Below, piece after piece: positions 56,324 to 59,340 of a stretch of DNA of 64,000 bases. A program made the translations under genes and the position numbers. A model generated the notes under the pieces. The model saw nothing but the letters and a program-made list of their open reading frames with translations. It ran no database searches and was not told where the DNA came from. The stretch comes from Octopus sinensis (Eukaryota), in contig NW_021832224.1 in assembly GCF_006345805.1 (NCBI RefSeq), forward strand, positions 420,970-484,969, given 5' to 3'. The first letter of the stretch is position 1; every line of letters starts with the position of its first letter.

Positions 56324-56529
56324 AAGTTCTTAGTTCTCTTCAAGAATGAACGCTAAAGGAAAAAACTTAATAAAATTTGAAGTCAAGATTTGTTATTAAA
56401 ACATCTATTCTGAGCTTGATTTTCTTTCAGTTGAAATGAGAACTTTTCAGGGTTTTTGAATCCACATGCAGTGATCTCTTTTCCCCATTCTTACAATACA
56501 TCTTCTATTGATTCTAAAAGGAAAACAAA

Positions 56530-56661
56530 ATGAAAAATACGTTCAGTAGATCCAGTAAATCAAGCAATTGGCATTGCTTCCCTTCATTTTCAAGAAGCTG
56601 ACCATTTAATTGCTCATGGCCGTCGAAAGCTAAACAACGCCGAACAAAAAATCCAAACACT
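56530..56661 (+). pseudogene. xseB: Bacterial exodeoxyribonuclease VII small subunit remnant
   Basis: FQEADHLIAHGRRKLNNAEQKIQTL matches the XseB C-terminal pattern FEE...L...C...L..AEQK.Q.L. The N-terminus is deleted or frameshifted. Confidence 0.6.
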
Positions 56662-57999
56662 GAATAGCATTCCCAAAAAACTTAAAAAATTCACCTTTAT
56701 TCTCAATGATAATGTCATAGCAATTACCAAAAATGTAATCGCTGTAACAAGTATTCTCAGCCACTTTTTTAATAGCCTTATTGCTAACCACATTCACGAC
56801 GACCTGATAAAAGTCATTCTAAGAATTCCAGGTTACGTAAAAACACTTATCGAGCAAAGCAATCAGATGAAAGAATCAATGAAAAACGTGATTAGCACTG
56901 CTAAATTTAAGCAGTTTGGTCTCCATCGATGTGCATGAAATCAAAAAGCTTATCGATACTATCAAAGCACTGAAAGATCAGGACCCCTTTACCCTCGTTC
57001 ACATTCTTCCAGTAAAAGGACAAGGCATAAAAAGAGAAGGCATGCATCCAACGCCTTATCAAAAAGGAAAACTATTTAATAGAAAAACAGGAGAATTACA
57101 TCTTTATAAAAATCCTAGGCTAACATTCTTTAAAGTTTTTTGGAAAGCACGTTCTCAAGTTTGCTGAAGAAGATCCCAATATTGTTGCTATCACACCTGC
57201 TATGCACGTCGGCTCTTGCTCAGATGTTTTTATGAAGCGATATCTAGACAGCTGCATAGATGCAGTCATTACCGAGGGAAACTCTTTTGCCTACTCTCTA
57301 GGTATGAGCTATAATGAAAAACTAAAAGTCATTGCCTTTGTCTAATCAACTTTCCTCCAGCGTGCTTTTGATAACATTTATCACAATGTTTGTGTTCAAA
57401 AGCATCATTAATCGCCCTGGTCTAGCTTTTGATGATGGAATCACTGCTCAAGGGCTCTAAGATATTGAATGCCATGCCCAATATATTTATCGCGCAGCCT
57501 TGAGGCGGGAAGGAATATGCTAAAAGCCCTCCTACAAAGTGCTTTCGTATGGAAACTTCCATCTGCTATCCGCTATCCTAACTTACAGACAGTTGACGAA
57601 GAGATTCAATTCGAAAAAGTTTTTTTAGCAAAGAATCCCTTAAAAAGGAAAAAATCTAACGATAGTAGCTTTTGGCCACGTGGTGGATATTGGTCTGCAA
57701 ACACGCGAGCTTTTGCTTTTAGAAGACCTTGATGGAACAGTCATCGACCAATCTTTGTTAAACCTTTGGATGAAGATACTTTGAAAATTCTCGAGGTGTT
57801 GTTATAATTGAAAAACATTCACTTCAAAGTGGCATGGGATCGATTATCAATTCTTTTATTGTCCAAGAAGGCTTGACTCATTTACACGTTAGGAAATCAG
57901 CATGCTAATCATGCAGACTTGTTAAAAGAAGTTGGACTTTACCCCGACAATATTGCTACAGGTTTTAGAGACTTCTTCAAAACAAACTGCCAGGGTCCA
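56662..57999 (+). pseudogene. dxs: Bacterial (Chlamydiae-like) 1-deoxy-D-xylulose-5-phosphate synthase, decayed
   Basis: LNSIPKKLKKFTFILNDN..AITKNV, FKQFGL, LVHILPVKGQG, IVAITPAM, STFLQRAFDNIYHNVCVQ, PSAIRYPN, FVKPLDE, HSLQSGMGS, LLKEVGL. No introns; stops and multi-base deletions. Confidence 0.93.
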
Positions 58000-58830
58000 A
58001 TGAAAAAAATTGCTCTTTTTCCAAAAACTAAAGAGAAATCAAAAAATATCTTTTCTAAAAAAAGCATCCAGGTTGCTGTTGGAGATGATAAAGCAAGCGA
58101 TCTTAAGAGGCACCTCTTTTCTCGGCAAACTCGTAGGATATTGAATGGTTGATCACAATGAGAGGAGATGGATCTATCTTGCGCGTAGCGCATAAGTACG
58201 CTGATATCGATGCAGTTATTTTATGAATTAATTTCGGGCATCTCGGGTTTATGGCAGATGTTCAAATCATCAATATCATCCTCTGACTGGAAGATTTAAT
58301 TCACCGGCAGTTCACATTTAAAAATAGAATAATGATCGAAGGAACATCTCAAAGTAAAAAGTCTTTCTTTTCCATAAAGAATTGTCTCCTACAACTAGTA
58401 CACAATCCTATTATTATTAAAATGGCAATTTATGTTATCTTTATCTGAATAGGCTTGAAGCTGATAGTGTCATTTTAGCAACCTTTAATATGTCAACAGC
58501 TTACTCTTTAAGTTGCCGGTAGTCCTATCTTAAGCCCTGATATTAATGCTTTTGTCTTAACTTCTATTTGTTTACATACCATTTCAAATCGTCCTTTCGT
58601 TCTTACACTAAACCGCAAAATTTAAAACGAGTATGTGAGTGAAAATGAGTCCATTGAAGTTTCTGCAATGGTCTCAACCGCTTTGAGCTAAAAACGGGAG
58701 AAACGATTAAAATCAGACGCAGTCAAAAAAATTCAAACTCGTTAATTTAAACCACATTGACTTCTACTTTACTCTCCGAACAGAGCTCTGCTGATCCGGA
58801 AAGCTTCGTCAATCAAAGGAAATTGATTAA
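58000..58830 (+). pseudogene. nadK: Bacterial NAD kinase, decayed
   Basis: MKKIALFP, RGDGSILRVAHKY (GGDG motif), INFGHLGFMAD, NRIMIEG, ADSVILAT.NMSTAYSL, PILSP, HTISNRP, LRTELC*SGKLR. Confidence 0.9.
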
Positions 58831-58842
58831 GCAGTTTCTCTC

Positions 58843-59340
58843 ATGATTCCTTTAAAACTTGCGTTTAATTTGTCCGCTTTTAACCTGACTGGAGAAAAAT
58901 TTGATTCATATCTTCGCTATCAACAAGATAAAAAAGCAATCCAAGCTCAATACTCTTTAGGAATGACCGGAATCATCTCTGCAAATCAAACGCATGGTGG
59001 TTTGATGCAAGCCCTTGGAAAACGCTTATACTACGTAACAACAGGTCCTCGTATTATCAATGGCCTTCATATTGCAGGGCGAACAATGGGATCTAAATTA
59101 AAACTAAAGCAAAGCCAGGGCTTTTTTATAATCATCATATTACATGTTTTGTTGTAGGAACCAATATAAGAAGTTGTCATTATCCTTAATGGAAAGGTTT
59201 ATAAAACTCTTAATCCAAAAGACAACTCTTTAGACTTGTGATTTATCATAGTGAGCCATTAGATAAAGCATCTCTCAAAGTAAGGGGTGAAACCCCTCCT
59301 TTTGCCTATTATTACATGCGTATTATGCAAGCAGATCAAA
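58843..59340 (+). pseudogene. pgeF: Probable YfiH/PgeF (laccase-domain, peptidoglycan editing factor) remnant
   Basis: ISANQTHG (Q.HG motif), LHIAGR (H.GWR-like), VGTNIRSCHY (GP.I..CCY-like), LDL*FI (FDLW-like). The ADC motif is lost. Confidence 0.55.

Follow-up and report, generated by a model that had tools for sequence, protein, structure and literature searches.

Stretch and contents

The 64,000-nucleotide stretch of contig NW_021832224.1 of the Octopus sinensis assembly GCF_006345805.1 that we analysed here (hereafter the window) carries, amid animal genes and transposons, the decayed remains of three bacterial genes: part of xseB, which encodes the small subunit of exonuclease VII, most of dxs, encoding 1-deoxy-D-xylulose-5-phosphate synthase (DXS), and the complete length of nadK, encoding NAD kinase. 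The remnants span positions 56587–58830 on the plus strand, where they are collinear and abut one another, and at least 2.2 kb of bacterial DNA can be recognised, starting within xseB, taking in dxs and finishing where nadK ends. A first-pass annotation, made from the letters alone, had described consecutive intron-less, same-strand bacterial remnants with operon-like spacing at this site, and for these three genes Pfam and tblastn bear it out. Taken together, the insert has suffered 16 frameshifts, six in-frame stop codons, the loss of one normal stop codon and a deletion of about 550 bp that fuses xseB to dxs; the frameshifts and in-frame stops amount to 22 disabling lesions in 2.16 kb, or one per 98 bp, against a background of 71.8% nucleotide identity to the closest relative. 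The features of the insert are as follows.

56587–56663, plus strand: remnant of xseB (exonuclease VII small subunit), codons 38–64 of about 94
56660–56663, plus strand: xseB/dxs deletion junction, about 550 bp of donor DNA gone
56651–57996, plus strand: dxs pseudogene, residues 155–628 of 630
58000–58830, plus strand: nadK pseudogene, residues 1–280 at 58000–58809

Anatomy of the remnants

Three approaches were used to delimit the genes: three-frame translation of 56330–59420 followed by a Pfam scan, tblastn of the proteins encoded around dxs in the closest relatives (the neighbours of the DXS proteins P0001 and P0002) against the window, and a frameshift-aware protein-to-DNA alignment written for the dxs and nadK remnants. 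P0001, the closest relative, is the DXS of metagenomic contig ENA ERZ25068685 (ctg4768), and the locus of the same organism is referred to below as L004.

Only 27 codons of xseB survive. The 77 nucleotides align to nucleotides 114–190 of L004 xseB with about 82% identity, and tblastn places residues 39–63 at 56588–56662 (72% identity over 25 amino acids, E 4e-8). The Pfam Exonuc_VII_S match is weak (E 0.09) and the fragment lies directly upstream of dxs. The deletion that follows removed xseB codons 65–94 together with dxs codons 1–157, its ends meeting at a shared TGA: where the donor xseB reads ...CAAACTCTGA/TT and the donor dxs ...GCCATGA/ATAACATCCC (slash at the junction), the window reads CAAACACTGA/ATAGCATTCCC. 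Such a shared triplet is the signature of a microhomology-mediated deletion. The fusion is in frame, joining xseB codon 64 to dxs codon 158 within a stop-free chimeric frame of 134 codons (56534–56935, plus strand). This fused frame shows no sign of use.

The dxs remnant aligns to residues 155–627 of P0001 over 441 codons with 67.8% identity and is collinear throughout, though 11 frameshifts and a single in-frame stop (57343) interrupt it and 24 residues have been deleted. By tblastn, DXS residues 155–628 correspond to 56651–57996 but are scattered across three frames, and the Pfam matches fall in the expected order: DXP_synthase_N (E 1.7e-7, profile positions 152–241 only), Transket_pyr (E 2.4e-9) and a weak Transketolase_C (E 0.08). 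The N-terminal 154 residues, which include the thiamine-diphosphate-binding part, are absent and the reading frame is not intact; the remnant is a pseudogene. The motifs STFLQRAFDNIYH.VCVQ and P(S/T)AIRYPN, which the first-pass annotation had likened to chlamydial DXS, are indeed present and agree with DXS of the Simkania clade.

The nadK ATG (58000) directly follows the end of dxs, as had been noticed at first reading. Alignment to the L004 NadK is collinear over the full length of the protein (267 codons, 69.3% identity), with five frameshifts, nine deleted residues and five in-frame stops (58134, 58224, 58284, 58623 and 58792). Pfam recognises both NAD_kinase (E 1.1e-5) and NAD_kinase_C (E 1.1e-4), and the remnant retains GDGS and the NFGHLGF (GxLGF-type) motif region. 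The original TAA stop codon has become CAA (58810–58812), and the frame now continues to a TAA at 58828–58830. The nonsense codons and multi-codon deletions that had been reported from inspection are borne out by the frameshift-aware alignments, with six stops overall, 24 residues deleted in dxs and nine in nadK.

Beyond these three genes, tblastn with the P0001 and P0002 neighbourhoods gave no match to xseA, tpiA, secG, def or outer-membrane protein genes anywhere in the 64 kb, and a permissive tblastn with all open reading frames (ORFs) from eight loci returned noise only. No inverted or direct repeats that might point to a mobile-element carrier bracket the insert, nor are there RNA genes within or near it at E<=1.

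The donor belongs to the Simkania clade

A stitched 450-residue DXS translation found 7984 homologues in a word-indexed search of 5.8 billion proteins. The best two were P0001 (E 6e-159) and P0002 (E 1.4e-158), for which ungapped-frame BLASTP gives 61% identity. Clustered with P0002 at 90% identity are the type-strain DXS of Simkania negevensis (WP_013943232.1) and the DXS of several Simkania sp. genomes. In the alignment columns that the window covers, DXS identity is 67.7% to P0001, 66.5–66.7% to S. negevensis and 55–62% to other Simkaniaceae-like metagenome-assembled genomes, whilst P0001 and the Simkania DXS are themselves 86.8% identical. When the stitched translation serves as the query, identity is about 42% for Protochlamydia, and it is 33% at most for 75 sampled non-chlamydial genomes, a set drawn from a GTDB scan with generic DXS patterns that lacks the closest relatives and serves as an outgroup sample only.

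The first-pass annotation had called for DXS and NadK phylogenies alongside frameshift-aware alignments, and in both trees (neighbour-joining, 200 bootstraps) the remnant nests inside the Simkania clade. For DXS, the window groups with P0001 in 82.5% of bootstraps and with P0001 plus Simkania in 97.5%; for NadK, it groups with L004 in 97% and with L001 plus L004 in 97.5%. A donor that had been called Chlamydiae-like can therefore be narrowed to the Simkaniaceae.

Gene order gives the same answer. In all five close relatives inspected, def-secG-tpiA lies on one strand and xseA-xseB-dxs-nadK, its genes abutting one another, on the other. Amongst 88 sampled dxs loci, xseB and nadK directly touch dxs in 13, every one of them chlamydial, whereas about 1 kb of other genes intervenes in the Firmicutes, deltaproteobacterial and other loci. 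Because this abutting order is chlamydial only and because their DXS identity does not exceed 33%, Firmicutes and deltaproteobacteria are ruled out as donors, removing a doubt left standing at first reading. Within the Simkaniaceae, then, the donor either belonged to the genus-level Simkania clade or was its sister.

In one Simkaniaceae-like relative (L007, an ENA ERZ26858540 contig), insertion sequences of the IS630 family and DDE_Tnp_1 type, at 1067–2163 and 11167–12934, lie close to the xseA-xseB-dxs-nadK block on both sides. Such insertions may account for the differences between relatives in what follows nadK.

Decay and age of the insert

To follow decay by codon position, changes on the window branch were counted at sites where three Simkania-clade relatives agree. 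At positions 1, 2 and 3 these amount to 16.1%, 13.0% and 29.7%, compared with 4.5%, 2.1% and 35.5% by the same count in the functional sister lineage. Changes from GC to AT (136) outnumber those from AT to GC (61), and the GC content of the insert (36.8%) lies between that of the donors' dxs genes (44%) and that of the host window (34%). The surplus of changes at the first two positions, which are hit almost as often as they would be in the absence of selection, points to neutral evolution at roughly 0.11–0.14 substitutions per site since selection ended; the additional change at third positions would be the portion gathered in the donor lineage before transfer. By these measures the insert is non-functional and appears to be old. 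If ordinary animal neutral rates apply, a rough estimate would place the event somewhere around ten to a hundred million years ago. Since the host encodes diphosphomevalonate decarboxylase (MVD) of the mevalonate pathway in the same window, it has no need for DXS, and the insert is without functional consequence for it.

The host is a tiny-intron animal

The rest of the window holds LINE reverse transcriptase/endonuclease ORFs, hAT and Tc1 elements and spliced OLA1, MVD, RPC5 and CBF/Mak21 genes. When the spliced MVD was used in an exhaustive HMMER search, the best named matches were all metazoan (nematode, arachnid, insect, salmonids, ctenophore and tunicate) at 50–56% identity, with no close relative among them. 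By its MVD, its tiny introns and the wealth of transposons in the window the host is an animal, and the suggestion that this locus is a piece of a chlamydial genome, now pseudogenised, in animal DNA is supported.

Eight introns could be delimited, seven of 26–28 nt and one of 35 nt. A 2026 survey found such tiny introns confined to myxobolid myxozoans (Henneguya salminicola median 27 bp) and Dicyema japonicum (PMC13644364), and the D. japonicum genome has 36.7% GC and 49% repeats (PMC6736024). As the 26–28-nt introns match that survey, the host lineage is probably a tiny-intron parasite, either a myxobolid myxozoan or a dicyemid.

The introns of MVD (29725–31000, minus strand) and OLA1 (2300–3700, minus strand) have minimal GT...AG signals, and in OLA1 a 30-nt in-frame stretch at about 3414–3443 is intron-like without GT at its start. 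An apparent frameshift in OLA1, considered as a sign of poor assembly, was rejected as such: it is the 35-nt intron.

Probable insertion and the route of transfer

Homology to the Simkaniaceae locus, retention of the donor's gene order, placement in the donor clade, the pattern of decay and the animal surroundings together make it highly probable that a genomic fragment of a Simkania-clade bacterium was inserted into the nuclear genome of this animal and then decayed neutrally. The course of events may be pictured as follows. A chromosomal piece of a Simkania-like chlamydia would have been captured in a heritable cell of the animal, possibly a germline or proliferative one whose double-strand-break repair took up the bacterial DNA. 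The insert would never have functioned in the host, or would have lost its function at once. Neutral drift would then have brought about 0.12 substitutions per site under the host's GC-to-AT bias, along with the 16 frameshifts, six nonsense codons, small deletions and the single microhomology-mediated deletion of about 550 bp; transposons would have settled around the insert afterwards, leaving what is now an inert molecular fossil.

How the bacterium came to be near such a cell is a separate question. It is possible, if rather less than even, that the transfer was real but that the donor was no symbiont of this animal, being instead a chlamydia that infected the same cell or tissue of the parasite's host, or a source of ingested or environmental DNA. 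Amoebae as well as vertebrate cells can be infected by bacteria of the Simkania clade, and fish gills by Simkaniaceae; a tissue-dwelling parasite, if the host is one as the 26–28-nt introns suggest, would share cells and tissues with bacteria of this kind. That a single small fragment is seen in 64 kb also fits such a route. On the other side, a heritable insertion needs bacterial DNA in germline or proliferative cells, and intracellular residence is the easiest route by which this is achieved, as with Wolbachia inserts. A donor living inside this animal and one that shared a host cell with it would fit the present data equally, and the insert, at about 0.12 neutral substitutions per site, is too old to bear on whether a symbiont exists today.

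We advance only tentatively, at a similar level of confidence, the proposal that a tiny-intron parasite (myxobolid or dicyemid) once harboured, or still harbours, a Simkania-clade chlamydia in its own germline or proliferative cells. If true, chlamydial symbiosis would be documented for the first time in such animals. They could then act as reservoirs or vectors for Simkaniaceae with which the fish, annelids or cephalopods that they parasitise become infected, and further fragments, some of them possibly functional, would be expected elsewhere in the genome.

Extent of the insert

On either side of the bacterial genes lie stretches of unassigned sequence and, beyond these, transposon remnants.

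55900–56321, minus strand: left flank, decayed pogo/Tigger-like remnant with a weak Pfam HTH_Tnp_Tc5 match (E 0.016)
56322–56586: sequence separating the Tigger-like remnant from the xseB fragment, without similarity to xseA or the 5' part of xseB
58831–59747: sequence between nadK and the Tc1-like element, containing a 104-codon ORF at 58843–59157
59748–60416: right flank, Tc1/mariner-type deletion derivative with terminal inverted repeats of 116 nt, 89% complementary

The left edge had initially been put at 56450. Comparison of 56322–56600 with the C-terminal end of XseA and the N-terminal end of XseB, in both DNA and frameshift-aware protein alignments, gave scores at the level of shuffled sequences. 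A 114-bp 5' part of xseB at about 72% identity would be detectable, yet it is absent, and the left edge of the insert is thus placed at 56587.

On the right, the first-pass annotation had described a four-gene operon, xseB-dxs-nadK-pgeF. The first three genes stand, as set out above; the fourth does not, and we consider it very improbable that the insert extends into a decayed pgeF at 58843–59340. An ATG does lie 12 bp past the current nadK stop and opens the 104-codon frame, which is marginally above chance length (P about 0.036), and to our own eye NQTHGG and HIAGRTMG faintly resemble the PgeF motifs QVHG and HAGWRG. Searches of 58843–59340 nonetheless gave no Cu-oxidase_4/PgeF (PF02578) or other Pfam match in six frames at E<=10. 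Phmmer against PDB retrieved no PgeF structure, the sole faint match being to a consensus PDZ domain (PDB 6nek, E 0.54), and a search of the 5.8 billion proteins with the stitched translation brought up nothing at E<=10, although it detects the adjoining remnants, at 68% identity, with ease. A frameshift-aware alignment to PgeF, for which the comparison was E. coli YfiH rather than a chlamydial PgeF profile, scored 33 against 30.5 ± 4.2 for shuffled queries.

The relatives tell the same story. Neither tblastx nor blastn found similarity to 13 chlamydial loci, and five post-nadK genes from relatives, aligned to both strands of 58810–59750, again scored at shuffle level. In the five close relatives the gene after nadK varies, being a 399-amino-acid protein, Legionella_OMP or insertion sequence elements; pgeF follows nadK in none of the five, and none of the 88 fetched dxs loci contains it. 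At the insert's lesion density, moreover, a lesion-free 315 bp would be unusual (about 4%). With Pfam, PDB, the protein search, the relatives' loci and the YfiH alignment all negative, pgeF was rejected as the fourth gene. The ORF at 58843–59157 may stem from a donor gene peculiar to that lineage, from intergenic DNA of the donor or from the host's own sequence; a single-sequence AlphaFold model of its 104 residues is a long helix (pTM 0.28) and uninformative.

Is the insert physically joined to host DNA?

The assembly places the insert between eukaryotic transposons in a 64-kb stretch with animal genes, and from this and from the pattern of decay a physical join to host DNA is strongly inferred. 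Several points nevertheless weigh against integration: both junctions rest on a single assembly, the 265 bp to the left and 917 bp to the right of the segment match no recognised host sequence, and no exact copies of the window's ORFs were found in public assemblies, so there is no independent sighting of the locus.

These points would suit an assembly chimera or contamination, in which DNA of a bacterium from the sample, whose genome may itself have been degenerate, was misjoined to animal transposon sequence. Samples of invertebrates taken for sequencing commonly include chlamydiae as cobionts, both flanks consist of repeats (Tigger-like and Tc1-like) of the sort at which misjoins occur, and the support for integration comes from the assembly, not from reads. 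We regard this explanation as very improbable, however. A living chlamydia depends on dxs and nadK and could not carry copies as heavily lesioned as these, with 22 disabling lesions and a 550-bp deletion. Divergence at second codon positions is 13%, as against 2% in the functional lineage, and base composition has moved towards that of the host. The bacterial part is 2.2 kb only, with no further gene of the donor neighbourhood in the 64 kb. Host ORFs in the same window are free of frameshifts: a hAT ORF stays open for 1137 bp (P = 2e-4 given the indel rate seen in the insert), and the host MVD alignment runs unbroken across 219 residues. With host exons and this transposase ORF intact in the same window, the lesions cannot be put down to general sequencing error.

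Domestication of the transferred DNA, with the fusion ORF (56534–56935) or the 104-codon ORF expressed and functional, has in its favour two open stretches of 134 and 108 codons but is negligibly probable, given that the fusion ORF is part of the DXS non-catalytic linker (residues 155–246) and ends at a frameshift, that the substitution pattern is near-neutral, that inspection reveals no introns or other host gene features and that the model of the 104-residue product is an uninformative helix (pTM 0.28).

Comparison with other bacterial transfers

Wolbachia and a few other symbionts are the familiar sources of decayed bacterial inserts in animals. Nuclear Wolbachia transfers (nuwts) in arthropods and nematodes are mostly non-functional and decay through frameshifts, stops and deletions. 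The present insert resembles them in being DNA of an intracellular bacterium, with gene order kept, that probably lies and decays in animal nuclear DNA, and it displays both the phylogenetic nesting among bacteria and the host-like regime of neutral decay that mark this class. It differs in its donor, a chlamydia rather than a member of the Rickettsiales, and in its host, apparently a tiny-intron parasite rather than an arthropod or filarial nematode; here, too, there is one small, old fragment only. Examples of endosymbiont-to-animal insertions are given in PMC4558871 and PMC5429809.

The nearest counterpart in gene content is the xseA-xseB-dxs-nadK locus of S. negevensis and other Simkaniaceae, which has the same genes in the same order with the same abutting spacing, at 66–71% amino-acid identity. 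In the relatives the dxs and nadK frames overlap or touch, whilst in the window the nadK ATG directly follows dxs. The window copy departs from this locus in starting within xseB, without xseA, in having lost 550 bp, in carrying 22 lesions and in lying seven GC points below the donors' dxs.

Transfer from Chlamydiota to a eukaryotic nucleus also has a precedent in the Archaeplastida, where the chlamydial genes are ancient, functional, intron-bearing, dispersed and often targeted to the plastid; by contrast, what is described here is a contiguous piece of an operon, without function, in an animal host. Chlamydia-derived genes of plants and algae are treated in PMC6189191. As far as the account in PMC4082486 goes, the bacterial cluster of Trichomonas vaginalis is likewise a contiguous multi-gene fragment in a eukaryotic parasite, and it has served for studying what becomes of acquired DNA; it is, though, a recent one in a protist, whereas ours is old, short, thoroughly pseudogenised and in an animal. 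Literature searches brought up no earlier account of DNA from Simkania or other Chlamydiae inserted in the genome of a myxozoan, a dicyemid or any other animal.

The value of the insert is as a pointer to an association between an animal and a chlamydia. Its kept gene order and firm nesting in one clade make it a datable record of intimate contact with a Simkania-like bacterium, and a lead for the ecology of symbionts and pathogens in a poorly known parasitic group. It also offers a clean, small case of the decay of transferred DNA, combining a microhomology deletion, drift towards AT and about one lesion per 100 bp. For annotation there is a caution: a DXS or NadK match in this genome should be taken neither for contamination nor for a working gene.

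Flanking elements and other features of the window

Both flanks had been assigned to transposons at first reading, and the two assignments have fared differently. The Tc1 element is firm. Its terminal inverted repeats are unusually long, each built of 4–6 tandem 21-nt units with a consensus of about ACTAAGTGGGATTAAyAnCAA, and its internal ORF of 132 amino acids covers only the helix-turn-helix part of the transposase (Pfam HTH_23, HTH_28 and HTH_Tnp_IS630), from which it can be classed as a MITE-like deletion derivative. The Tigger element on the left is weakly supported, by the HTH_Tnp_Tc5 match listed above; its end may lie near 56319, reading CAGT... on the minus strand and adjoining TA.

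About 3.5 kb upstream of the insert is a complete 5S rRNA gene, the only one in the window (53012–53130, minus strand; Rfam RF00001, 81.7 bits, E 8e-16). Between the two, an open stretch of 228 codons at 53932–54615 on the plus strand coincides with a GC peak of 42%, against about 33% around it, and has no Pfam match and no similarity to the chlamydial loci. Further away, LINE-type endonuclease/reverse-transcriptase ORFs and a hAT-type transposase occupy 3900–6800 (plus strand), 9469–11350 (minus strand), 40500–42200 (minus strand) and 45400–46100 (plus strand). These ORFs are long and intact, reaching 379 amino acids, which suggests that transposons have been active recently in the host genome.

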